Shown here: one piece after another, positions 2,837-61,402 of the stretch
Position numbering within the stretch: the stretch's first letter is position 1
How the letters are laid out: the number at the start of each line of letters is the position of its first letter
IMG/VR virus record: IMGVR_UViG_3300032315_001715
Coordinates: 310,001-374,000 of that record
Direction: 5' to 3' (one strand)
DNA length: 64,000 nucleotides
Position numbers and translations under genes: made by a program
The notes under the pieces: model-generated
What the model saw: the letters and a program-made list of their open reading frames with translations, nothing else
The model's database searches: none
Told to the model about the DNA's origin: nothing

Positions 2837-3038
2837 TCCATCTGAGTATTGCTAGGGTGCGATCAAAATCACACATGGCAAAGTGCTCGGCTTGCTTTCT
2901 CAAATTTTGGTCATAAATCAGGCACAGCAACTCCGGTCGAGTCGTCTCGAGATTGCCGGCTACCTTGCTGTCGTAGACCGCATCAATTGCCCGACCTAGA
3001 TCATCATCTGACATGGCTAGCAGCCATCCATTAAGCAT
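2820..3038 (-). CDS. hypothetical protein
   Basis: TGATG coupling to ligase stop. Confidence 0.55.
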   Translation of the reverse strand: MLNGWLLAMSDDDLGRAIDAVYDSKVAGNLETTRPELLCLIYDQNLRKQAEHFAMCDFDRTLAILRWNDSHD

Positions 3039-4441
3039 CAGATCTTCTCCCCCGGTTCCCAGCCACGGAATTGCATGAACACCGGAAACCGCAGGCTCCA
3101 GCTATCGCCCTTTTGGCTCTTGGTTAGTGCATCTCCCTTGATTTCAACGATACGGCCCAAGACGGCGTTGCGATCAGCCCAGATCGCATCTCGCAGCTCT
3201 TCACTATAACCGCCGCCAACCGTTACCTCGACCAGCTTGCCTTGATCTGTGCCTCGGCAAATCAATCCGCCCAAAGTGTTGGCAAACTTGCTTTCAGGCT
3301 TGCCGGGTTCAAATCCAATCACTTCTAGATCAACGGTGATCCATGGCTTGATCTTTAGCCATGCATCGGTGCGCTTGGTTCGATATGTGGACGACGGGTC
3401 CTTGATCATCACGCCCTCATAGCCAGCCTCGATGGTCTCAGCGTTGAACTCCTTGAGGGCCTGTTGGCCTTCCTTGGTATTGAGATCAACCCTAAGCTTG
3501 GGTACCACGTAGATAGCACCGCTAGAAATCTCATCCAGTAATGGCTGGAATTCCACCAACGCTTCATGCCGTTGTGTTTGCGTAAGATTGCACTCTCCGG
3601 CAAGGAAATCCGCCATGGGTAAGCAATCAAACAGCGCGAGCTTGGCATCCTTGGTATCGGCCTTGCCCTTGCCTCGATTGAGCTGCTTCATCAGGGCCTG
3701 GAAGCTGCGGCTGGTCATCTCGCCGTCTAATACCATGCTACACTTGAGGCTAGGTAACAGCTTGGCTTGCATGGCTGCGATATGCTCAAAATTGGTGTTG
3801 ATGCGCCCTTCTCGAGTGTAGTGTGTGACCTCGTTGCGCTCCTTGTCGAGGAAGCTCAACACCCGCACACCGTCGAGCTTGATATCAATCAGCTTGGAGC
3901 CGATCATTTTCTTGGGATGGTCTTCGCCGTTCTTAGCCAACTGGCAGCTGAACTCCGGGATGATATAGGGTTCAGCTGCGGCGCCGTTTTTGCCCAAGAC
4001 CTTGTTGATGGTGCTGTCAGTGCAGCCGCATTTGAAATCCTTCAGCAAAACGCGGCGATAAAACCCGTTCCAATCCCGAACGTTGGCGGTATCAGATGCG
4101 GCACGCAATGCATCTCGAGCGGCATTGCCGCTGAGCTCACGGGTTTCTAGCTTGGCCGCGATCGCCTTGAAATCATTCCAGGTGAATGTGCTGGCTGGTT
4201 GTGGCGCATCGTCCTCATCGGTGATCAACGGGGCCTTTCGCACGCCATATGTGCGCAGCGCATCATACGCCATGAGAGCTCCTTCAAAGAACTCAATCAA
4301 TCCTGCATCCCAAGCTGCTTGGATGATGTGCTCCTTGTGACCACGAGCAGAGACCGATTCCAGCGCGTAGATTACATCGGCAGCGGTGAGCAGATTTAGC
4401 GAGGATGGATCAAAGTCGTCGTCGGAATGGGCATCGGCCAT
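3038..4441 (-). CDS. lig: ATP-dependent DNA ligase
   Basis: KLDGVR (motif I), LDGEM, EGVMIK, WLKIKP, C-terminal OB fold with SLRFPVF. Confidence 0.95.
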   Translation of the reverse strand: MADAHSDDDFDPSSLNLLTAADVIYALESVSARGHKEHIIQAAWDAGLIEFFEGALMAYDALRTYGVRKAPLITDEDDAPQPASTFTWNDFKAIAAKLETRELSGNAARDALRAASDTANVRDWNGFYRRVLLKDFKCGCTDSTINKVLGKNGAAAEPYIIPEFSCQLAKNGEDHPKKMIGSKLIDIKLDGVRVLSFLDKERNEVTHYTREGRINTNFEHIAAMQAKLLPSLKCSMVLDGEMTSRSFQALMKQLNRGKGKADTKDAKLALFDCLPMADFLAGECNLTQTQRHEALVEFQPLLDEISSGAIYVVPKLRVDLNTKEGQQALKEFNAETIEAGYEGVMIKDPSSTYRTKRTDAWLKIKPWITVDLEVIGFEPGKPESKFANTLGGLICRGTDQGKLVEVTVGGGYSEELRDAIWADRNAVLGRIVEIKGDALTKSQKGDSWSLRFPVFMQFRGWEPGEKI

Positions 4442-4466: not shown

Positions 4467-4494
4467 ATTATAGCACGGATTGCAGCATGGTCAA
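4467..4494 (-). promoter_or_regulatory. sigma70-type promoter
   Basis: TTGACC-N16-TATAAT then AAGGAG RBS of ligase. Confidence 0.8.
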
Positions 4495-4534: not shown

Positions 4535-4995
4535 TGGATGGATTACGCTGTGTTTGCGGTTGGCTGGGGTCATAGACCATATCTCCCCCGCGGTTAAATG
4601 GGGGAGATGTATCGTGGCTGCGTACAGGCAGTTTCCACAGACCGAATTTTCATGCTGCTTATTAAAGCGTCTGGCGGTTGTCCGGTACCAGAATCACATG
4701 CACATCTTGGATTTTTTTTAATCCAACAGCGGGGGAGCAAAGCAGGGTATTCGATCAACCTGCTTGCGCTTGATCGTTAACAACGTCAGTTAGAGCGATC
4801 CGTTTTGTCAGCCGGCTTCACCGGAGAAGATAATTTCGTGACCTCGATGCCGCCTTGATCAACTATACCGAGCTCGGGCTGGGGAGATTTATACGTTGGC
4901 ACAGCCGTGCTTCTCGGTCGCCCGCAGCGGGCATTTGTTCGCGTTCCTGACGGTAACCGTCCCTTCCGCGAGTGGATTCAGTACCACCATGTCAT
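4535..4995 (-). ncRNA. large structured ncRNA, unassigned family, copy A
   Basis: Intergenic; shares identical 11-16 nt blocks in the same order, plus covarying hairpins, with 54870-55330; ends approximate. Confidence 0.8.
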
Positions 4996-5056
4996 GTCTG
5001 CTATATGAAGTTTGTGATGTTACCGGCATTTGAGGTTTGGTTACAAATGATAAAAT

Positions 5057-5084
5057 AGAAAGCGGGCCAAAAGGCCCGCTTTCT
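5057..5084. terminator. intrinsic terminator, probably bidirectional
   Basis: AGAAAGCGGGCC-AAAA-GGCCCGCTTTCT with A/T-rich flanks. Confidence 0.8.
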
Positions 5085-5090
5085 TTTGGT

Positions 5091-5960
5091 TTATCCTTTC
5101 CAGTCGGATGGAGGTTTGCATCCGCTGGCATCATATGCAGGAAATGGATTAGCCTGGTATGACACATCACGCTTCTTTCGAAGCCTGATGCCCATTTTCT
5201 CCAGGTTCTTGGCCGTGTTGTAATACATGGCCAGCACAGCATCCGGTTGGTTTGGATTAGCCCTGCTGAACTGCGTGGTCTGCGTTTGCCACGTCGTGGC
5301 ATTGCCGAATCCGGTGCCAACATCCTGTGTTACCGGGCTGCTGGTTAGGCTTTGCTGCATTGCGGCGCCGATGATGCCGCCACTGGTCTTGACCTCGGCA
5401 GAATTCATGGGCATTGCCGCAGCAGCAGATTTTACCATGCTGGCATTGATGCGCCGATCGCTTGATTCGGTTAACGCTGCGCCCACCCATGTGTTATTGA
5501 TGGATGATATCTGTGACCCGTAACCTATAAGTCCTCGCGTCATGTAGTAGTCTTCGTGCCGTGTTGGTTCGACATATTCCGAAAATACCATCGCACCAAT
5601 GACCCCGGTATTGGAAGTGCTGCCGCCTATGGCATTAACATAGCTGTCCCTGCTGCGGCTGAAGAAGAACTCCGCAGCTTCTTGGTTGCTGATCTTCCAC
5701 CCAGGAATGCTGATGGTATCCTGTGCATTGACAACGTATCCTTGGCTGCTTGGACCGGCAGGCTTGCCTTCCAGTATGTCAAGTCCGTCAACACTCAGTA
5801 TGAACAATGCACGCGATTGCGTGTTGTTCCTGATATCGATGGTATAGTTGTTGCCTTCCCTGCCTTCGATCCAGACAGCACCATTGTGATAGTATTCATC
5901 GGCAGGGGTCCGACCCCTAGGACGCACGATCATCTCGTAGCGCCTTGCGTTGTCTAGCAT
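5091..5960 (-). CDS. conserved hypothetical protein (vWA-associated)
   Basis: 289 aa; LSVDGLDI, GYVV, IPGW, GVIGAMVF, GTGFG motifs; directly downstream of vWA gene. Confidence 0.75.
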   Translation of the reverse strand: MLDNARRYEMIVRPRGRTPADEYYHNGAVWIEGREGNNYTIDIRNNTQSRALFILSVDGLDILEGKPAGPSSQGYVVNAQDTISIPGWKISNQEAAEFFFSRSRDSYVNAIGGSTSNTGVIGAMVFSEYVEPTRHEDYYMTRGLIGYGSQISSINNTWVGAALTESSDRRINASMVKSAAAAMPMNSAEVKTSGGIIGAAMQQSLTSSPVTQDVGTGFGNATTWQTQTTQFSRANPNQPDAVLAMYYNTAKNLEKMGIRLRKKRDVSYQANPFPAYDASGCKPPSDWKG

Positions 5961-11050: not shown

Positions 11051-11125
11051 GCTTTGCTGTGCTGGTGGACAGCCGGAGGCCTCTAAAACCTCGCAGTGAT
11101 GGTTCAATTCCGTCGCAGAGCACCA
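11051..11125 (+). tRNA. tRNA with CUA anticodon (amber suppressor-type), discriminator A73
   Basis: Acceptor GCTTTGC/GCAGAGC + ACCA; anticodon loop CT-CTA-AA (11083-11085); T arm GATGG-TTCAATT-CCGTC. Confidence 0.82.
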
Positions 11126-11130
11126 AGTTT

Positions 11131-11206
11131 GCTTCCATAGTTCAGTGGTCAGAACGGAGACCTCTAAATTCTCTTGTCGCAGGTTCGAATCCTGCTGGAA
11201 GCGCCA
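11131..11206 (+). tRNA. tRNA with CUA anticodon (amber suppressor-type), discriminator G73
   Basis: Acceptor GCTTCCA/TGGAAGC + GCCA; D arm GTTC/GAAC; loop CT-CTA-AA (11164-11166); T arm GCAGG-TTCGAAT-CCTGC. Confidence 0.9.
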
Positions 11207-26734: not shown

Positions 26735-27313
26735 ATGGTAAACATTTTTCTCGTCAGCGACACTCACTTCGGTCATAAGAACATCTGTCTGTTCAACGGA
26801 CCGGACGGAAGTCCACTGCGTCCATGGGATGATCCCGATGAGATGGACGAGGCCATGGTCGAAAGATGGAACGGTGTGGTTAAACCAAATGACGTGGTTT
26901 ATCACCTCGGTGACGTGGTGATGAACCGCCGATGTCTTGCTACCGTTGCCCGGCTCAACGGAGACAAACGGCTAATACTCGGTAATCACGATATTTTTGA
27001 TCACAGCGACTATCTCGTGCATTTCAAACGGTTGCACGGTAGTTACAAGCTGGACAACTTCCTGCTAACCCATATACCGGTGCATATTGACTCAGTTGCC
27101 CATTGGACTGAATGTAACATCCACGGGCATGTACATGCCCACGATATTCCCAGTGGCAAGTATTTCAACGTCAGCGTGGAAATGATCGGCTACACGCCGA
27201 TTAGCCTTGAGGATGCTAGGGTTCGAATCAGGGAAAAGCAGGAAAAATATAAGGTTGACATGCAGCAGAATGATGCTAATTTGCCAATTGAAAATAGGAG
27301 AACTGCCGAGTGA
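26735..27313 (+). CDS. calcineurin-like metallophosphoesterase
   Basis: SDTHFGH, LGD, GNHD, THIP, HGHVH. Confidence 0.9.
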   Translation: MVNIFLVSDTHFGHKNICLFNGPDGSPLRPWDDPDEMDEAMVERWNGVVKPNDVVYHLGDVVMNRRCLATVARLNGDKRLILGNHDIFDHSDYLVHFKRLHGSYKLDNFLLTHIPVHIDSVAHWTECNIHGHVHAHDIPSGKYFNVSVEMIGYTPISLEDARVRIREKQEKYKVDMQQNDANLPIENRRTAE

Positions 27314-28767
27314 CAACACCTACCGCTACTAAAGTTCGTTCAATTCGTCGCGACGAGGGCTATCAGGATCCAATCAAGCTTTATCTCAAGGATGTGGGCA
27401 AGGCTCCATTGCTGACCCATAAGCAAGAGATCGAAATTAGCCAAACCATCGAAGCTTCGAAGCAGGCCATCACTGATCGGCTTCTTGGGATCCCCTTGAC
27501 CATTGCTACCGTTACATCCTGGATTGATGCTGCACGCATCAATGGACAGGATGCCCTCGAGGTGTTTGATATTGAACTGGATGATACCGACTCGGTTAGT
27601 CCAGACTTTCTAATACAGCTCGATCAGGTCAAGGAACTTTGTGAACGCTATCATACCGACGTGTCGAATATCGAACTGAGATCCCAGTTGGTCGAAATGT
27701 TCAACGAGCTTCCGTTGAATCCTGCTAGCATTGGCCATCTCATGGAGCAGATGATCGGCTTTAACAAGCAGGTCGTAACCATTGACGGTGAAATGCTGCG
27801 CCTGGCCGAAAGCTGCGGGATCAAGCGAGAGGAATGGCTCAAGGACTATCTGTTGAATGACGATCTTTCATGGATCGAGGCTTGTGCCGGGCGATCGTAC
27901 GAACTAATGCGAACGACATATCATGAAAAAATGTCCACCATTGCAGATCGAATCAATGAGATCAACGGTCTTACCGGGATGAGCCTTCGAGAGCTCCGAG
28001 AAACCGTCAAGGATTTGCGGGTACAAGCCAAGATCAAGGAAGCCGCTATCCAACGAATGGTTACTTCCAATCTGCGTCTCGTGGTTAGCGTGGCCAAGCG
28101 ATACAATCAAAACAACCCAACAACCCTGCTCGATCTAGTGCAGGAAGGCAACATCGGCCTGATCAAGGCCGTTGAAAAGTTCAAATGGCGCCTAGGCTAT
28201 CGGTTTAGCACATATGCTACTTGGTGGATTCGCCAGGCTATCATCAAGGCTACTACCGAACACAGCAAGACCATTCGGGTGCCTAGCCACGTTCTTGATG
28301 CGATCAAGAAGATCAATCGGGCTGCCAAGGAATATGTGAGCTCACACGGTTACGAGCCAAGTGATGCTGAGCTTGGCAAGCTGGTTGGCATGGATCCCGA
28401 AAAGGTCAATCGCATGCTACAGGTTGCCAAGGATCCGATCAGCCTCGAAACTCCGGTCGGTGATGATGAGGACTCAAACATCGGCAACTATATCGAGGAT
28501 CATTCCGCAATTGATGCCATTGAAAAGATCAACGATGACGATGTTGCTCGTGTGGTGGCCGAAGCACTCGGCACGCTAAACAGTCGAGAAGAGCGCGTAA
28601 TCCGCATGCGGTTTGGTATCGGTACCATGGACGAGCACACCCTGGAGGAGATTGGTAAGCGGTTTAACGTAACCCGTGAGCGGGTTCGACAGATCGAAGC
28701 CAAGGCCTTGCAGCGCCTGCAGACCCCGCAGCGCCTCAAGGAGCTCGAGTCGGCACTCGAGGACTAA
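27310..28767 (+). CDS. rpoD: RpoD-like primary sigma factor lacking region 1.1
   Basis: DPIKLYL (1.2), long non-conserved region, SNLRLVVSVAKRY, DLVQEGNIGL, STYATWWIRQAI, TLEEIG...TRERVRQIE. Confidence 0.95.
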   Translation: MTTPTATKVRSIRRDEGYQDPIKLYLKDVGKAPLLTHKQEIEISQTIEASKQAITDRLLGIPLTIATVTSWIDAARINGQDALEVFDIELDDTDSVSPDFLIQLDQVKELCERYHTDVSNIELRSQLVEMFNELPLNPASIGHLMEQMIGFNKQVVTIDGEMLRLAESCGIKREEWLKDYLLNDDLSWIEACAGRSYELMRTTYHEKMSTIADRINEINGLTGMSLRELRETVKDLRVQAKIKEAAIQRMVTSNLRLVVSVAKRYNQNNPTTLLDLVQEGNIGLIKAVEKFKWRLGYRFSTYATWWIRQAIIKATTEHSKTIRVPSHVLDAIKKINRAAKEYVSSHGYEPSDAELGKLVGMDPEKVNRMLQVAKDPISLETPVGDDEDSNIGNYIEDHSAIDAIEKINDDDVARVVAEALGTLNSREERVIRMRFGIGTMDEHTLEEIGKRFNVTRERVRQIEAKALQRLQTPQRLKELESALED

Positions 28768-32579: not shown

Positions 32580-32957
32580 TTAGAATAGCTCTGGATGTTT
32601 CTTGCTGTATAGACGCATTATTTGACCAGCAACAGAATTGGCCTCGTCTTCTTGGGGGCTGCCTGTCTTACCAGAATCCTGTGATAGCTCTCCGTTTAGA
32701 TCCTGCCGATAATGTACCAATTCATGTGCGAGGCTTCTAAGAACGTCCAATATGTGCCGATGTTTTGGATACAGATGTATTCGTTTATTGCCAGGGCTAT
32801 AAGCTGCAAAGCTGTTTGATTCTTTATTGGTTATATGACGATCTATGAGGCGCACGTCTGGTACGGTTTTGAGTTCCAGATGCTCGCACGCAAATCGAAT
32901 GAAATCGATCAGGGTCGACGCAGGATTTTCACCATGTATTAGATCCATCATTTTCAT
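32580..32957 (-). CDS. HEXXH metallopeptidase-like protein
   Basis: LAHELVHYRQ...EDEANSVAG. Confidence 0.65.
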   Translation of the reverse strand: MKMMDLIHGENPASTLIDFIRFACEHLELKTVPDVRLIDRHITNKESNSFAAYSPGNKRIHLYPKHRHILDVLRSLAHELVHYRQDLNGELSQDSGKTGSPQEDEANSVAGQIMRLYSKKHPELF

Positions 32958-51465: not shown

Positions 51466-52563
51466 ATGGCACACAAGTACGATATGGCCGTATTCATCGG
51501 CCGATTCCAACCATTCCATCTAGGTCACCGAGCGGTGATCGAACAGGGGCTTGAACAAGCAGACCACGTCGTGGTGCTTGTTGGCTCCGCCCGCAGCCCG
51601 CGTTGCCATCGCAATCCGTTCAGCTTTGCCGAGCGCAAGGAAATGATCCTCGGTGCATTTTCCGGTGAGGTTCGCGATCGGGTCATCGTCCTGCCACTCG
51701 AGGATGCTGCATACAATGATGCGCAGTGGGTCCTCAATGTGCAAAAGCAGGTAGAGCAGGGTGCATGGTACGCCGGTCTGGCTGGTGCTACACTAGGTAC
51801 AATTTCCGAGAAGGTCCGCGTTGCGCTCATCGGTCACAGCAAGGACGCAACCAGCTACTATCTCAAGCTGTTCCCGCAGTGGGATAACATTGAGGTGTCC
51901 AATTTCCGAGATCTCAACGGCACGCTGATCCGCAGCACGTTTTTCAGCAACATCGGACACATGTGGGTCAAGGACGCTGACGGTCACCGCGCCGGCGATC
52001 TCCCGCGTGATGCAACCATCACTGGCAACGTGCGAGAGTTCCTCGAAGGATTCATTGACACGCCAGAATACAAGCTGATCCGGGATGAAAACGAGTTCAT
52101 CCGCAAGTACCGTGCGAGCTGGGCATCAGCGCCTTACGCACCGACATTCGTTACCGTGGATGCCATCGTGGTGCAGAGTGGACATGTGCTGCTGGTGCGC
52201 CGAGGTGCCAACCCGGGCAAGGGACTGTGGGCCATGCCTGGCGGGTTCATCAACGCTGATGAACGCATCCGCAATGCCGTGATCCGCGAGCTTCGTGAGG
52301 AAACCGGCATCAAGGTGCCTGATGCGGTGCTGCGTGGTAGCATTGTTGAACAGGACGTGTTTGACGATCCCAATCGATCGGCACGTGGACGCACGATCAC
52401 GCATGCGTTCCTCATCAAGCTGCGTGACGAGACCGCGCTGCCCAAGGTCAAGGGCATGGACGATGCTGACAAGGCACGATGGGTTCCCATCAGCCAGCTC
52501 AAGCCCGAGGATTTTTTTGAAGATCACTACCATATAGTGATGTCAATGTTGGCTCGGATCTGA
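51466..52563 (+). CDS. nadM: bifunctional NMN adenylyltransferase / ADP-ribose pyrophosphatase (NadM-Nudix)
   Basis: GRFQPFHLGH, RNPFSFAER; Nudix box GGF...AVIRELREETG. Confidence 0.95.
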   Translation: MAHKYDMAVFIGRFQPFHLGHRAVIEQGLEQADHVVVLVGSARSPRCHRNPFSFAERKEMILGAFSGEVRDRVIVLPLEDAAYNDAQWVLNVQKQVEQGAWYAGLAGATLGTISEKVRVALIGHSKDATSYYLKLFPQWDNIEVSNFRDLNGTLIRSTFFSNIGHMWVKDADGHRAGDLPRDATITGNVREFLEGFIDTPEYKLIRDENEFIRKYRASWASAPYAPTFVTVDAIVVQSGHVLLVRRGANPGKGLWAMPGGFINADERIRNAVIRELREETGIKVPDAVLRGSIVEQDVFDDPNRSARGRTITHAFLIKLRDETALPKVKGMDDADKARWVPISQLKPEDFFEDHYHIVMSMLARI

Positions 52564-52995: not shown

Positions 52996-54387
52996 ATGCG
53001 TTATAATCTACTGTTGGATACCGACAGCTACAAGGCAAGCCATGCCTTCCAGTATCCGCCGAACACCACCCGGGTATTCAGCTACATCGAAAGCCGAGGT
53101 GGCGAATTTGATCGCACGGTGTTCTTCGGCCTGCAGATGTACCTCAAGCAATACCTGTCCACGCCCATTACCCAGGACATGGTCGATGAGGCCGCAGAAT
53201 TCTGGGCCGCACACGGCGAGCCCTTCAATCGCGAAGGCTGGGAATACATCGTCAATGCACACGGCGGTCGCCTGCCGGTGGTGATCAAGGCCGTTCGCGA
53301 GGGTGCGGTGATCCCGACCCGCAACGTCTTGCTCACCATAGAAAACACCGATCCGCGGTGCTTCTGGCTCACCTCCTTCCTGGAAACCGCGTTGCTGCGT
53401 GCCGTTTGGTACCCGACGACGGTGGCCACGCTGAGCTGGCACGGCAAGCAGATCATTCGGTCCGCCCTGGCAACGTCCGCCGAGGACGTTGAGGGCCAGC
53501 TGCCGTTTAAGCTGCACGACTTTGGTGCCCGCGGTGTAAGCTCCCGGGAGAGCGCCGGTCTCGGTGCCGCTGCCCACCTGGTGAACTTCATGGGATCGGA
53601 CACCGTCACCGGTGTTCTCTACGCCCGGGAATTCTATGGCGCTCCCATGGCAGGGTTTTCCATCCCCGCTGCTGAACACTCGACCATCACCAGCTGGGGT
53701 CGCAGCCGTGAAGCTGACGCATATGCCAACATGCTGGCACAGTTTGGCAAGCCCGGTGCGCTGTTTGCCGTGGTCAGCGACAGCTATGACATCATGAACG
53801 CTGCGCGGGAGATCTGGGGCGGCGACCTCAAGCGGTCGGTGATGTCCAGTGGTTCCACCCTGGTGGTGCGTCCGGACAGCGGCGACCCACTGACGGTGCC
53901 GGTGGATGTCGTGGAAGCACTGGGCGAGCGGTTCGGCTACACCCTGAACTCCAAGGGGTTCCGCGTGTTGCCGAGCTGCGTGCGGGTGATCCAGGGAGAT
54001 GGCATCACCATCAACAGCCTGCCCAAGATCCTGGGCAATCTGCTCGGTTGTGGTTGGAGCGCGGACAACATGGCGTTTGGCATGGGCGGCGGGCTGTTGC
54101 AGCTGGTCAACCGCGATACGTTGAAGTTTGCCATGAAATGCTCGGCTGCCATGATCGACGGCGAATGGGTTGACGTGTTCAAGGATCCCATCACCGACGC
54201 TGGCAAGCAGAGCAAGCGGGGCCAGCTGATGCTGACCCGGGAGACCGGCAAGTGGGAGACCATGCGACTGGGCAGCGGTTTTGACTGGGCCAACAGCCTG
54301 CACACCGTGTGGCAAAATGGCGAGCTTGTGCGGGATTGGACCTTTGATGAGGTGCGTGCGGCCAGCAACGAGCCCGTGCTTGATTAA
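52996..54387 (+). CDS. nadV: nicotinamide phosphoribosyltransferase
   Basis: DTDSYKASH, LHDFGARG, IPAAEHS, VSDSYD, RPDSGDP, IQGDGI, FGMGG. Confidence 0.96.
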   Translation: MRYNLLLDTDSYKASHAFQYPPNTTRVFSYIESRGGEFDRTVFFGLQMYLKQYLSTPITQDMVDEAAEFWAAHGEPFNREGWEYIVNAHGGRLPVVIKAVREGAVIPTRNVLLTIENTDPRCFWLTSFLETALLRAVWYPTTVATLSWHGKQIIRSALATSAEDVEGQLPFKLHDFGARGVSSRESAGLGAAAHLVNFMGSDTVTGVLYAREFYGAPMAGFSIPAAEHSTITSWGRSREADAYANMLAQFGKPGALFAVVSDSYDIMNAAREIWGGDLKRSVMSSGSTLVVRPDSGDPLTVPVDVVEALGERFGYTLNSKGFRVLPSCVRVIQGDGITINSLPKILGNLLGCGWSADNMAFGMGGGLLQLVNRDTLKFAMKCSAAMIDGEWVDVFKDPITDAGKQSKRGQLMLTRETGKWETMRLGSGFDWANSLHTVWQNGELVRDWTFDEVRAASNEPVLD

Positions 54388-54413: not shown

Positions 54414-54437
54414 CCCGGTTGGTGTATGCCAACCGGG
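54414..54437. terminator. hairpin terminator between convergent genes
   Basis: CCCGGTTGG-N6-CCAACCGGG with A/T flanks. Confidence 0.65.
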
Positions 54438-54750: not shown

Positions 54751-54869
54751 TATAAATGCTCTCCATAATATTGGCTATCAAATATTTATCCACATGGATG
54801 GATATCATTTGGTTATTTGATCGACGCACCGATGGATACCGCAACACACTCAACAACAAGATGGTGCTG

Positions 54870-55330
54870 ATATCGTGGTAATGTATCCACGTGCGGAAGG
54901 GTTGGTTTCCAACAGGAACGCGAACAAACGGATGAACCATCCATTCGACCGGGAAGCACGGCTGTGCCTATTGACATGAATCTCATCGGCCCGAGCCCGG
55001 ATATATTGACAGCAAATGGCAATCGCTGTCGCAAATCATCTTCTCCGGTGAGGCCGGACGACAAAATGGATCGCTCTATCTGGTCATGGATAACGATCAG
55101 GACCAACAAGGATTAGCGTGTTTTCCTGGTTGATTTGCCGCTGCTGGACCGTGTTGGTCCGAGATGTGCATCGTGATGCTGGTACCGGGCAACCGCCAGC
55201 GACCTAGAATGGTCTAGCATGTAACACCCTGTGGACGCTGCCTATATGCAGTTTTCGTTTACATCTCTCCCAGAATATCGGGGGAGAGTATGGTCAGTAG
55301 CCAACTACCGGCTGCAAACTGCCGTGTGAT
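54870..55330 (+). ncRNA. large structured ncRNA, unassigned family, copy B
   Basis: Intergenic between divergent genes; collinear homolog of 4535-4995 with compensatory changes; GCAA tetraloop supports + strand; ends approximate. Confidence 0.8.
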
Positions 55331-55387
55331 CGAATGACGCAGGTAAATACCACACAAACAAATATCCCATCTGCGGAGCTCCGTGCA

Positions 55388-57256
55388 ATGACTGATTTTT
55401 TCAAACCAACCAATCGACCTTCCAATCTGCATGAGACCCTGCAATACAGCAACGTTGGTCTTGCTGAAATGCGTGTTGCAGCAATGGCTGGTCCAGATGC
55501 TCCGCTGCATGTGTTCGTGGACAATACTGAACCCATGCCGGTGACGCTGGGATCAGAAACCATAACCATCATAGGTAACATCGCCGTACCCACCACGGTG
55601 AATGTTACATCCACGCCCACCGATCCCGTGCATGTGCATCTAACCGAGGTTGGATCCAGTGGGTTGCTCGACGTGGCTTATCTACCGGTTGGGCAATCTA
55701 CCTCACCATGGATCGTAGTTGGCAATGTGAACATAGCCACCACCAATGGTGGTATTGAGGTCAACAACGACACGGGTAATCCGTTGCGCATCATCGGCAA
55801 TGTCAACACCACGGTCATTAGCACGGTTTCTGTCACACAGGGAACCTCTCCTTGGGTGGTGATCGGCAACACCAACATCACCAATACACCTACCGTTGCG
55901 CTATCAAGCAACGCGGTCACGGCTACGCAGGGAACATCTCCTTGGGTGATGTCAGGCAACGTGAATGCCAGCATCACGGGCACGGTGACAACGACCGTCG
56001 TGGCAGGTGCCACGGATGCGTTTGGTAGGTTGAGGACCTCTGATGGGTTCACCCTGGGAGACTACAAGCATACATATGGAATTGATCCGAATTTCAGGGA
56101 CACCCTTATTAACGGCGGTACCGTCACCCACATACCCAACCAAGCAGCCGCAAGGCTTGCCACGAGCAACAACGTGGCCAGCCGTGCCATACACCAGACC
56201 AAGATGTACCACAACTACATGCCCGGTAAGAGCCAATTGATCGAAAGCACCATCAACTTTTACGAGGCCACGGCCAACGTGACCAAGCGCACGGGCTATT
56301 TCGACGATCTCAACGGCATCTACTTTGAGCAGACCGGTATCGGCGAGCTGGCATTTGTGATAAGGACCAACACCAGTGGCACTCCCAGCGATGTCCGACG
56401 GGTTACGCAATCCCAGTGGAACCAAAATACCTGCAACACCGCGATCGCGGGCACGTCAACCGACGGGTCTAACTACGGGGTATTTGGTACATGGAACCTG
56501 GATATCACCAAGACGCAGATATTCTGGACCGACTTCCAGTGGTTGGGCGTTGGGCGCGTGCGTTGTGGGTTCATCCACAACGGTGAGACCGTCGTAGCAC
56601 ATGAGTTCTACAACAGCAACAACCTACCAGTGGTGTACATGGCCAATCCAAATCTGCCCATTCGCTGTGAGATATTGAACACCGGTGTCACCGCAGGAGC
56701 GTTCTTTGACCAGATATGCTCCACGGTGATATCCGAGGGCGGATATTCGGAAAGTGGGATAGACTTTAGTATCAACTCTGGTACAACAGGTCAAGCAGTG
56801 ACCCTCGCCAACGGGGTGTATCCCATACTGGCCTGGAGGTTGAAGAACACGTTCAGGGGCTATCCTAACCGCGTGGTGGTTCGTCCCGGAAACATGAACA
56901 TCTATGCCGAAAACCGTCCTGCTTACTGGACGCTGATCAAGCTGGATAGCCTGAGCAACATAACCCTTGGTAGCAGCACCTGGACCAGCGCCGACGACGA
57001 CTCTGCCGTGGAATACAACCTCACCGCCACGGCATTCACCGGCGGCGACAGAATGGATGGAGGCTTACTGGGAACCACCAGCCCAGGCGGCAGGGGCACT
57101 GGTGTTGCTCCTATCAATAATCCTAGCTTGGCCAAGAAGAACTTCATCGCACAGAACCAGGATTCAACCAATAGCGAGATATATGTCCTGTGTGCCCAAG
57201 CAATTGGCGGCACGACCACGGTTTGGTGTGACGTTCAGTGGCGCGAGATCTACTAG
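55388..57256 (+). CDS. virion structural protein with VTQGTSPW-type repeats
   Basis: Repeats then conserved DAFGRLR...YMPGKSQ...DFQWLGVGRVRCGF domain; start moved to 55388 (TAAATA 55344, GGAG); ends in TAG. Confidence 0.7.
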   Translation: MTDFFKPTNRPSNLHETLQYSNVGLAEMRVAAMAGPDAPLHVFVDNTEPMPVTLGSETITIIGNIAVPTTVNVTSTPTDPVHVHLTEVGSSGLLDVAYLPVGQSTSPWIVVGNVNIATTNGGIEVNNDTGNPLRIIGNVNTTVISTVSVTQGTSPWVVIGNTNITNTPTVALSSNAVTATQGTSPWVMSGNVNASITGTVTTTVVAGATDAFGRLRTSDGFTLGDYKHTYGIDPNFRDTLINGGTVTHIPNQAAARLATSNNVASRAIHQTKMYHNYMPGKSQLIESTINFYEATANVTKRTGYFDDLNGIYFEQTGIGELAFVIRTNTSGTPSDVRRVTQSQWNQNTCNTAIAGTSTDGSNYGVFGTWNLDITKTQIFWTDFQWLGVGRVRCGFIHNGETVVAHEFYNSNNLPVVYMANPNLPIRCEILNTGVTAGAFFDQICSTVISEGGYSESGIDFSINSGTTGQAVTLANGVYPILAWRLKNTFRGYPNRVVVRPGNMNIYAENRPAYWTLIKLDSLSNITLGSSTWTSADDDSAVEYNLTATAFTGGDRMDGGLLGTTSPGGRGTGVAPINNPSLAKKNFIAQNQDSTNSEIYVLCAQAIGGTTTVWCDVQWREIY

Positions 57257-57374: not shown

Positions 57375-57647
57375 ATGCACGACAATTCACATGACGCCAC
57401 GGAAAGCCGCGTGGCACAATGGATCAACGCCAGGACAGGTCTGGGTAGCGGGAACGATCCAGTTGGTTTTGTGCTGGCCAGCTACGATCTCAAGATCCAG
57501 GAAATGGCTGAGATGCGGACAAAGCTTGCAGCCCTTGAAGAAATACTAGCCATGACGGCAAAGGTCTGCGGTCGCAACAACTGCAACTGCCCTCGATCCG
57601 ACCAGGTTAAAAAGCTGGTAAACGCATACATGGAGAAATTCGCATGA
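57375..57647 (+). CDS. hypothetical protein
   Basis: Start after promoter; coupled to rpiB. Confidence 0.55.
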   Translation: MHDNSHDATESRVAQWINARTGLGSGNDPVGFVLASYDLKIQEMAEMRTKLAALEEILAMTAKVCGRNNCNCPRSDQVKKLVNAYMEKFA

Positions 57648-58126
57648 ATCTTGAGGAATATCGCAATGACACCAATCGTGGGTTCATCGTGGCCGTGGCC
57701 AGTGACCATGCTGGCGTTGACATGCGGGTGGCGATCAGGGATCTTTTGAGAAGTACCGGAGCTCGCGGTCATTACGTGATTGATTTTGGTCCGATGCCCG
57801 TCGACGGTCGTGTTGACTATCCGGATTATGCGGCCAAGGTGGCGGAGAGCGTGCTCTCCGGTGAAGCTGATCGAGGCATCCTCATCTGCGGATCCGGCAT
57901 CGGCATGAGCATGGCAGCCAATCGGCACAAGGGTATCCGTTGTGCCATGGTCAGCGATGTCACCTCTGCACGTCTCAGCAGGCAACACAACAATGCCAAC
58001 ATCCTTGCGCTTGGTGCTCGGCTAATCGGCCCTGATCTTGCCTGGGCAATCGTAGAGGAATGGCTCAAGACACCATATGAGGGCGGCAGGCATGACCAGC
58101 GCATCGCCAAGATGGATGTTATGTGA
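57644..58126 (+). CDS. rpiB: ribose-5-phosphate isomerase B
   Basis: SDHAG, DYPD, ICGSGIGMSMAANR, HNNANILALG, GGRH..RI. Confidence 0.95.
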   Translation: MNLEEYRNDTNRGFIVAVASDHAGVDMRVAIRDLLRSTGARGHYVIDFGPMPVDGRVDYPDYAAKVAESVLSGEADRGILICGSGIGMSMAANRHKGIRCAMVSDVTSARLSRQHNNANILALGARLIGPDLAWAIVEEWLKTPYEGGRHDQRIAKMDVM

Positions 58127-60145: not shown

Positions 60146-61402
60146 ATGAGCACATTTTCCTGCCCGCTGGTTCGGGTATCCGAGGTCATTGACCATCCCA
60201 ATGCCGACCGGCTCAGTATCGTCAAGCTGGAAGGTCTGGGTTATACCTGCATCAGCGGCAAGCTGGAGGACGGTAGCCCGCGCTACAAGGCGGGAGACTG
60301 GGTGGTTTACATTCCCAGCGCCGCCATTTTGCCTGAATACCTGCTCAAGGAAATGGATTTCTGGAATGCAGAAACCCGCAAGGGTATGCTAGCAGGCAGC
60401 AACGGCGATCGGGTAAAGCCTCTCCGTTTGCGAGGCATCTTCAGCGAGGGTGTGCTGTATCCAGCATCAGTCACTGTGAATGACAACACTGAGATGATGC
60501 CTGAAGGTTATCTGCGCCGATACTGGCAAGTGGCCCTAGGAGAAAGCGATGGCGAGCTTTTGATGCGCATCGTGCGGCTCATGCCCGTGAATAAGCTGGA
60601 GGCTGTTGAGAGTATTGCCGGGCGCGATATGAGCGAACGTCTGGGCATCACCAAGTACGAGCCGCCCATCCCAGTCCACATGGCGGGTGAGGTAGCCAAC
60701 CTGTTTGACCACACCGTGCGCTACGATTTTGAGCGACTGGAGAGCGTGCCTGACATGTTTGCTTCAGACATGACGGTAACGGCCACTGAAAAGCTGCACG
60801 GAACCTTTTGCGCCATTGTCTATGAGCCTGGGCTAAACCACGCCGAGATGTTTGGCACCAACGGTGACATCATCGTCCACAGCAAGGGTCTCGGTGGTCA
60901 GGGCCTGGCGTTCAAGAACAACGCAGCCAATGACGGTAACCTCTATGTCAAGACCCTGCGCAAGCTGCTTGGTGACGGTCTGGAAGATCGCTTTCGCACC
61001 CTGGCCACCAGCTATGCTGGCAAGCGTTATGCCATCCTGGGCGAGATCTATGGAAAGGGTGTGCAGGACCTAGCCTATGGCACCAAGGAGCCTGAGTTCC
61101 GCATGTTTGATGTGATGGTGGATGATATCTTCCTACCACAGGACGAGCTGGGATTTGATCATTCATTGCATGGCATCCCGTTTGCACCCGTCCTCTACAA
61201 TGGACCGTTTAACATTGAGGCGCTTACCGCGGTGCGAGACGGCAAGACAACTGTAGGCGGAGATAACATCCGCGAAGGCATCGTGGTGCGTGCGGGTTGG
61301 TGGCAGCGCCATCCCATTCATGGTCGTCGGATCGCCAAGATGATCAGCCCTGACTACCTCTTGCGCAAGGTCAAGGGTGGCGAAGCAACGGAATATACCT
61401 AA
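60146..61402 (+). CDS. RNA ligase (DRB0094/Rnl5 family)
   Basis: HPNADRL OB-like N-domain, LRGIFSEG, TEKLHGT, GEIYG, FDV, REGIV, KMISPDYL. Confidence 0.9.
   Translation: MSTFSCPLVRVSEVIDHPNADRLSIVKLEGLGYTCISGKLEDGSPRYKAGDWVVYIPSAAILPEYLLKEMDFWNAETRKGMLAGSNGDRVKPLRLRGIFSEGVLYPASVTVNDNTEMMPEGYLRRYWQVALGESDGELLMRIVRLMPVNKLEAVESIAGRDMSERLGITKYEPPIPVHMAGEVANLFDHTVRYDFERLESVPDMFASDMTVTATEKLHGTFCAIVYEPGLNHAEMFGTNGDIIVHSKGLGGQGLAFKNNAANDGNLYVKTLRKLLGDGLEDRFRTLATSYAGKRYAILGEIYGKGVQDLAYGTKEPEFRMFDVMVDDIFLPQDELGFDHSLHGIPFAPVLYNGPFNIEALTAVRDGKTTVGGDNIREGIVVRAGWWQRHPIHGRRIAKMISPDYLLRKVKGGEATEYT

Follow-up and report, generated by a model that had tools for sequence, protein, structure and literature searches.

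A new large structured RNA of jumbo phages present in several diverged copies

Two intergenic loci in a large phage genome

The 64-kb stretch of viral DNA analysed here (the window) is part of IMG/VR contig 3300032315_001715, which is 452,799 bp in length. One of its intergenic regions lies between a gene for a 289-aa protein and a gene for an ATP-dependent DNA ligase (3038..4441, minus strand; PF01068, 3e-20). The 289-aa gene is closed by a bidirectional intrinsic terminator at 5057..5084, a 12-bp stem with eight G-C pairs followed by a T run. The ligase gene has a strong promoter of its own at 4467..4494 on the minus strand (TTGACC, 16-nt spacer, TATAAT, with extended TG), which scores 11 of 12 matches. 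Between them lies an element of roughly 450 nt on the minus strand, copy A, whose approximate transcript body runs from 4553 to 5000, from a conserved 5′ leader AGCAGA to a C-rich tail. It is preceded by a weak sigma-70-like promoter at 5017..5046 (minus strand; TTGTAA, 18-nt spacer, TAACAT; 8 of 12 matches). A second copy, B, is found on the plus strand at 54857..55318. Upstream of it, a bidirectional terminator (54414..54437) follows the NAMPT gene, and 16 nt after its tail begins a gene for a 640-aa virion structural protein (55334..57256, plus strand; phrog_1645, 6e-98).

The original prediction held that these two regions are collinear, diverged copies of a structured RNA of about 450 nt; the collinear homology is confirmed and the structured RNA supported. 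The seven conserved blocks that it listed are all present at the positions given in both copies, and the 16-mer CAGGAACGCGAACAAA occurs exactly twice in the window, where 0.04 matches are expected by chance. BLASTN of A against B gives 70.6-70.8% identity over 429-438 nt (E = 6e-37 to 4e-39), and MAFFT aligns the copies collinearly. Six stems that were proposed to differ in sequence but retain pairing are all real, and correspond to helices P3a, P4, P6, P10, P13 and P15 of the family consensus. However, some corrections are required. The functional span is slightly longer at the 5′ end, about 4553-5000 rather than 4535-4995, two of three proposed long-range pairings are not supported, a pseudoknot was missed, and the genome holds three copies rather than two.

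The element matches no described RNA family. A cmscan search of the window against Rfam 15 (4,227 families) at gathering thresholds finds only a tRNA, and permissive scans at E <= 10 find nothing inside either copy, the weak hits all falling on the terminator hairpin upstream of copy A (5001-5131). A further scan of 11 loci holding divergent members gave nothing at E <= 1. ROOL, GOLLD, OLE, raiA, HEARO, RNase P, tmRNA, SRP RNA, 6S RNA, pRNA, group I and II introns and the small ribozymes are therefore excluded as far as covariance models can see. The P4 and CR-I to CR-V signatures of bacterial RNase P RNA, which is similar in length, in having long-range pairing and pseudoknots, and in being encoded by a stand-alone gene, are also absent. 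Copy A does not lie inside a gene, where an intron would be expected, and ARAGORN did not detect a tmRNA.

Distribution and relationships of the family

BLASTN of both copies against 50,697 GenBank phage records found no match. Likewise, tblastn with the ligase and the virion protein shows no cultured close relative, with at most 35% identity for the ligase and about 50% to a cyanophage structural protein. By contrast, exact-pattern scans of IMG/VR and JGI metagenomes, together with a search anchored on the downstream ligase, recovered full-length homologues that were verified by nhmmer. There are 23 distinct sequences on about 36 IMG/VR contigs, plus JGI metagenome contigs, although the metagenome scan used a very specific pattern and added only six loci. 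Many of the viral contigs are 130-330 kb long and carry two copies; for example, other large contigs of 141-329 kb carry two diverged copies each. The contig that contains the window carries A, B and a third copy, C. A scan of 185,579 bacterial and archaeal species genomes with an 18-nt core block gave 21 hits, none of which is the element by nhmmer, but because this block is specific to the close clade, absence from bacteria is shown only at that sensitivity. One contig has a relative that shares only the 3′ half, which suggests a modular build.

In a tree of the RNA, A, B and C form one clade (support 0.976) that is sister to the single-copy orthologues found upstream of the ligase in related phages, whereas the two copies in other genomes cluster separately. 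Duplication therefore happened independently in different lineages, and the paralogues have drifted to 61-69% identity while keeping the fold. A decaying duplication without function, or a chance similarity, is effectively excluded: beyond the presence of two copies nothing favours it, and against it stand the E-value of 6e-37 between the copies, the occurrence of homologues in dozens of contigs, and the 53-65 base pairs kept by compensatory changes.

A conserved, pseudoknotted fold

Covariation across the family is very strong. RNAalifold on 19 diverse sequences predicts 75 pairs, 53 of them with compensatory double changes, and with ribosum scoring there are 99 pairs that are 90.1% canonical, against 35-43% when the 3′ partners are slid by 1-3 columns. 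Two covariance models were built for sub-domains and used to re-align all members. The 5′ domain is 99.0% paired, with 18 of 28 pairs changed on both sides, and the central domain is 96.3% paired, with 26 of 31; in both cases none of 500 shuffles reaches the observed values and slid controls give 29-44%. The case rests on covariation, as single-sequence folding energies are only modestly better than shuffles, with z-scores of -1.5 and -2.7.

The resulting architecture has about 17 helices, described here for copy A (all minus strand). The 5′ domain (P2 to P5) begins with the P2 hairpin (4971..4988; GGUGG/CCACU), in which 4 of 5 pairs have changed on both sides with 100% pairing. This is followed by P3 and the P3a hairpin (4941..4969), both covarying, with an invariant symmetric 5x5 purine internal loop (GAAGG opposite AGGAA), and by the P4 hairpin (4919..4933), with 5 of 6 pairs changed on both sides. 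The P5/P5a domain (4868..4917; CCGAG/CUCGG and GGCUG/CAGCC) has conserved GAAGCA and CGA.C.CGG.AUA junctions. The central domain (P6 to P10) comprises the P6 hairpin (4839..4861; alignment columns 153-157 with 171-175), which is absent in one member, the P7 hairpin (4812..4824), with a small loop closed by a U-G pair, and P8/P8a (4772..4800; GAUCG/CGAUC and UAAC/GUUA), which is 99% paired and flanked by conserved GGAUCGCUCU and AACGAUCA. The long hairpin H9 (4736..4770) has 10 of 11 pairs changed on both sides, and the P10 hairpin (4707..4726; UUGGAUU/AAUCCAA) 5 of 5. In the 3′ domain, P12 (4670..4692) has an outer stem whose pairs covary (columns 364-370 with 382-388), a UAC bulge and an inner CGG/CCG stem with a 4-6-nt loop, and carries the near-invariant GUACCG...AACCGCC. 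There follow the P13 hairpin (4657..4668; columns 357-362 with 369-372) and P14a (GUGG/CCAC) enclosing the P14 hairpin (CUGC/GCAG) at 4614..4638, with covariation such as UAUGAAA/UUUCAUG in one member. The terminal hairpin P15 (4582..4607; UCUCCCCC/GGGGGAGA) shows mostly G-U and one-sided changes, with both-sided changes in divergent members. A possible closing helix P1 (AUAU/AUAU) has no covariation, is mismatched in some members, and is left unresolved.

Two further pairings also covary. The loop of H9 (4749-4756) forms a 7-9 bp pseudoknot with a single strand about 100 nt downstream (4640..4647), GAUCGAAU pairing with AUUCGGUC, and the two strands change together across the family, for example GACUGAAU/AUUCAGUC, ACAAGGC/GCCUUGU and AUGGUUUU/AAAACCAU. 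The best duplex falls at the same relative place in 15 of 19 members, and cognate pairs beat permuted ones in all but 1 of 10,000 trials. In copy B both strands differ from those of A, with GUGUU in the H9 loop (55118..55122) and AACAC at 55223..55227. The second is a long-range helix that closes the 3′ domain, between AGAUGU (4702..4707) and ACAUCU (4605..4610) in copy A and at 55162..55167 and 55261-55266 in copy B. This pairing was among those originally predicted, and is supported by covariation in other members (GAGAUA/UAUCUC, GAGGUA/UACCUC and GGACA/UGUUU). Its 3′ strand overlaps the foot of P15 by 3 nt, so the two may be alternative pairings. The other two predicted long-range pairs, UCCAC/GUGGA and GACCG/UGGUC, are not supported: UCCAC belongs to P2, GUGG pairs with the downstream CCAC of P14a, and GACCG is invariant while its supposed partner varies.

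Several unpaired stretches are invariant in all 19 sequences despite about 55% overall identity, namely GGAAGGG opposite CAGGAAC, CCGRGAAG and the CGA.C.CGG junction. Such stretches could form the active site of a new large ribozyme, held in place by the pseudoknot and the long-range helix and either self-processing or acting on another RNA or a small molecule, and the lack of a terminator defining the 3′ end would fit processing. However, there is no Rfam match to any known ribozyme class, no conserved flanking sequence suggests splice or cleavage junctions, the element does not interrupt a gene, and invariant loops are equally typical of protein-binding RNAs. A ribozyme is not excluded, but appears unlikely.

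It is as RNA that the element is conserved. At paired positions G-U outnumbers A-C by 170 to 44 on the proposed sense strand, which is the strand originally predicted, while on the reverse complement the ratio is 74 to 83. No frame stays open through the element in any of 19 members, under code 11 or with TAG read as sense, and the longest open stretch in A is 63 of 157 codons. A small ORF starting at a conserved UAUGG was considered and rejected, since the AUG that follows P15 is missing in three members and tail indels between members are not multiples of three; a 441-aa ORF in one member is an accident, because the oxidoreductase gene there has its own ribosome-binding site and start further down. 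The alternative of a DNA-level element, such as a replication origin with a primer transcript, a recombination site or a mobile element, would accord with the several intergenic copies per very large genome, with the ligase gene next to one copy, and with a truncated extra copy of the first ~58 nt in three members, which suggests past recombination. It is nonetheless effectively excluded by the strand-specific G-U asymmetry and the promoter-like site conserved on that strand. Moreover, the C-rich tail is unfavourable for R-loop priming, there are no terminal repeats or target duplications, and paralogues at 61-69% identity are not recent transposition products. There is no gene-orientation switch at A or B and no GC-skew inflection at B, although the skew changes sign in the 2-kb bins around A, which was not resolved further.

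Transcription and possible modes of action

The element is probably its own transcription unit, although in the absence of expression data this is inferred from sequence. A TTG-type -35 hexamer with a -10-like hexamer 16-18 nt further on occurs at the same offset upstream in 13 of 19 members, despite the flanks being otherwise unalignable. Individually these matches are weak, many scoring no better than shuffled sequence, and only their fixed position argues for them. The phage also encodes its own sigma-70-family factor. A sigma-70-like promoter lies between the RNA and the next gene in 9 of 13 lineages, and in three lineages a conserved small gene on the opposite strand ends 16-43 nt downstream, while in L122, another locus with the element, the genes on both sides are on the opposite strand. 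No intrinsic terminator follows the RNA. The tail (4553..4576 in copy A; CCAGCCAACCGCAAA) is non-coding, and the 30 nt after the fold are 33% C and 14% G, against 24% and 26% in the body, which by inference only may represent a Rho-utilisation site or a processing region. Part of the tail, CCAACCGCA, appears complementary to the 3′ strand of helix 45 of E. coli 16S rRNA, but this was rejected as meaningful because a 9-mer match between RNAs of these sizes is expected about 2.6 times by chance and the tail sequence is not conserved outside the close clade.

These features bear on the possibility that the element is a giant cis-acting 5′ leader, in which the fold senses a ligand, a protein or the polymerase and controls read-through or translation of the operon it heads, for example by processive antitermination or by an alternative pairing at P15. 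A, B, C and most relatives are co-oriented with the next gene, often just after a terminator. Copy B ends only 16 nt before an ORF with no promoter in between, so at least that copy could be a leader. Furthermore, the long-range helix and the foot of P15 compete for the same three nucleotides, and P15 holds a GGGAGA purine run, so a switch is conceivable. However, besides the intervening promoters and convergent genes, downstream neighbours are unrelated across lineages, being ligase in the close clade (sometimes with an inserted oxidoreductase gene), virion structural proteins, and unknowns. There is no terminator or other expression platform and the AUG after P15 is not conserved. A leader is thus possible but doubtful, copy B fitting it best.

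The closest analogues in kind are ROOL and GOLLD, large, many-helix, pseudoknotted RNAs of phages or prophages that are transcribed as units of their own, were found through metagenomes (GOLLD in lake water), have no known function, and were shown by cryo-EM to form RNA-only cages (PMC12286853). A self-assembling particle in the manner of ROOL, GOLLD and OLE, perhaps even with mixed assemblies of the paralogues, would be in keeping with the ornate fold, the phage setting, the several diverged copies per genome, and conserved loops that include GNRA-like loops and the palindromic GGUACC. However, there is no homology to these RNAs, which are probably longer than this RNA of ~450 nt. No tRNA gene lies within any of 38 loci carrying the element, and in the window the nearest tRNAs are about 6 kb from copy A, whereas ROOL and GOLLD often seem to sit next to tRNA genes. 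In addition, the pseudoknot strands covary within each copy, which an intramolecular fold explains fully. The resemblance to ROOL and GOLLD is therefore an analogy of size and setting only, and assembly of this kind, while not excluded, is rather unlikely.

OLE, raiA and HEARO/omega RNAs have a similar size range, highly conserved internal loops and covariation supporting a complex fold, but none matches in Rfam, and where OLE and HEARO have partner proteins encoded alongside (OapA; IscB), no protein gene is consistently linked here. Indeed, a small HExxH metallopeptidase-like gene is adjacent in four lineages, yet in the window it lies 23-28 kb from both copies. The phi29 packaging RNA (pRNA) is also a phage-encoded, independently transcribed structural RNA that works in trans as part of a protein machine, and copy B and several relatives sit next to virion structural genes. 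However, pRNA belongs to a small podovirus group, there is no Rfam match, and the link to virion genes is not consistent across the family. Literature searches found no description of this RNA. A catalogue of candidate structured RNAs mined from IMG/VR by covariation holds motifs of 29-151 nt only (PMC10690425), so that a 450-nt multi-domain RNA is outside its range, although fragments might be among its unnamed motifs.

Collectively, the single most likely mechanism, advanced only tentatively, is that of a stand-alone RNA transcribed from its own sigma-70-type promoter about 15 nt upstream of the fold, perhaps ending at its C-rich tail or by processing, and acting in trans as a compact scaffold or partner for one or more phage or host proteins rather than controlling the adjacent gene. 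The invariant purine-rich internal loops are typical protein or tertiary-contact sites, the genomic context is not constant, and independent duplications kept with the fold intact suggest that dosage, or expression from several transcription blocks at different times of infection, is selected. As no protein gene is consistently linked to the RNA, the proposed partner is hypothetical. A more speculative and less likely possibility is that this is a class of large catalytic or self-assembling RNA specific to jumbo phages, whose two or three diverged paralogues per genome would co-operate, for example as a hetero-oligomeric RNA machine or as cages made at different stages of infection, which would make it an RNA-based organelle-like component of giant-phage infection.

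Only a handful of large (>400 nt) bacterial or phage non-coding RNA classes with complex conserved folds are known, namely rRNAs, RNase P, group I and II introns, tmRNA, OLE, GOLLD, ROOL, HEARO and raiA, and each has proved to be a ribozyme, a ribonucleoprotein core or an unexpected RNA-only assembly. The RNA described here adds a well-supported new class, with about 100 covariation-backed base pairs, a pseudoknot and invariant junctions. It is seen so far only in uncultivated viral contigs, many of them very large, often in several diverged copies, and has been duplicated independently in different lineages. Although its function is unknown, it may reveal something that jumbo phages do with RNA rather than protein.

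Partial and remnant copies of the RNA

In some relatives, the full RNA is accompanied by a remnant copy. At the locus L004, one of those that carry the RNA in related viral contigs, a truncated extra copy of the first ~58 nt of the RNA is present at 1478-1535, together with its upstream promoter-like region, and lies about 55 nt before the full copy. The same feature is found at three further loci, L002 (2749-2806), L003 (4607-4664) and L016 (2944-3001). Interestingly, the remnant has the stem sequence of a different subtype, as if one allele had been replaced by recombination at the invariant CAGGAAC block. A different kind of partial similarity is seen at about 4560-5000 (-) of L007, which is located on IMG/VR contig 3300047325_000130. 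Here, a divergent relative shares only the 3' half of the RNA (an H9-like hairpin, CCGCUG, P10, GGUACCGGACAACCGCCAG and the terminal hairpin) whereas its 5' half is unrelated and AT-rich. This sequence scores 32 bits against the central-domain model.

Genes adjacent to the RNA in related phages

The ligase gene that follows the RNA is split in L004 (2120-2959, 3010-3909 and 3920-4864), with an intein-splicing remnant and a DUF7487/DUF559 endonuclease-like ORF lying between the two halves, and the same arrangement is present in L003. In two other relatives, L006 (3132-4457, +) and L050 (834-2048, +), a gene for a FAD-dependent oxidoreductase of the DAO family has been inserted between the RNA and the ligase. 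In L006 the longest ORF call runs back to the conserved AUG at the 3' end of the RNA, which would mislead automatic annotation. A small (115-137 aa) HExxH metallopeptidase-like protein is encoded directly next to the RNA in four lineages, represented by L143 (8074-8469, -), L122 (1990-2337, -), L128 (11450-11797, +) and L120 (1336-1749, -), and is convergent with it in three of these. However, in the phage from which the window derives, the homologue of this protein (32580-32957, -) lies 23-28 kb from both copies of the RNA.

Translation, transcription and auxiliary functions encoded in the window

The window itself encodes a number of other features that are of note. Two tandem tRNA genes at 11051-11125 and 11131-11206 (+) both have the anticodon CUA, that is, they are amber suppressors (labelled tRNA-Pyl by ARAGORN). 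This hints at TAG read-through or recoding by the phage. In this window TAG ends 9 of 69 long open frames and no recognised gene is visibly interrupted by an in-frame TAG. The phage also encodes a sigma factor of the sigma-70 family (27310-28767, +; phrog_351, 7e-91), which may explain why promoter matches to the host consensus are imperfect. Both an RNA ligase (60146-61402, +) and an ATP-dependent DNA ligase (3038-4441, -) are present, and in the block downstream of the latter lie a glutathionylspermidine synthase homologue (174-1367, -) and a DUF350 membrane protein (1991-2386, -), each an unusual auxiliary gene for a phage. Intriguingly, an NAD salvage module lies next to copy B of the RNA, comprising a fusion of a cytidylyltransferase-family (NMN adenylyltransferase-like) protein with Nudix (51466-52563, +), nicotinamide phosphoribosyltransferase (NAMPT; 52996-54387, +) and ribose-5-phosphate isomerase B (57644-58126, +). 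This module resembles phage NAD-regeneration pathways that can offset NAD-depleting defences.
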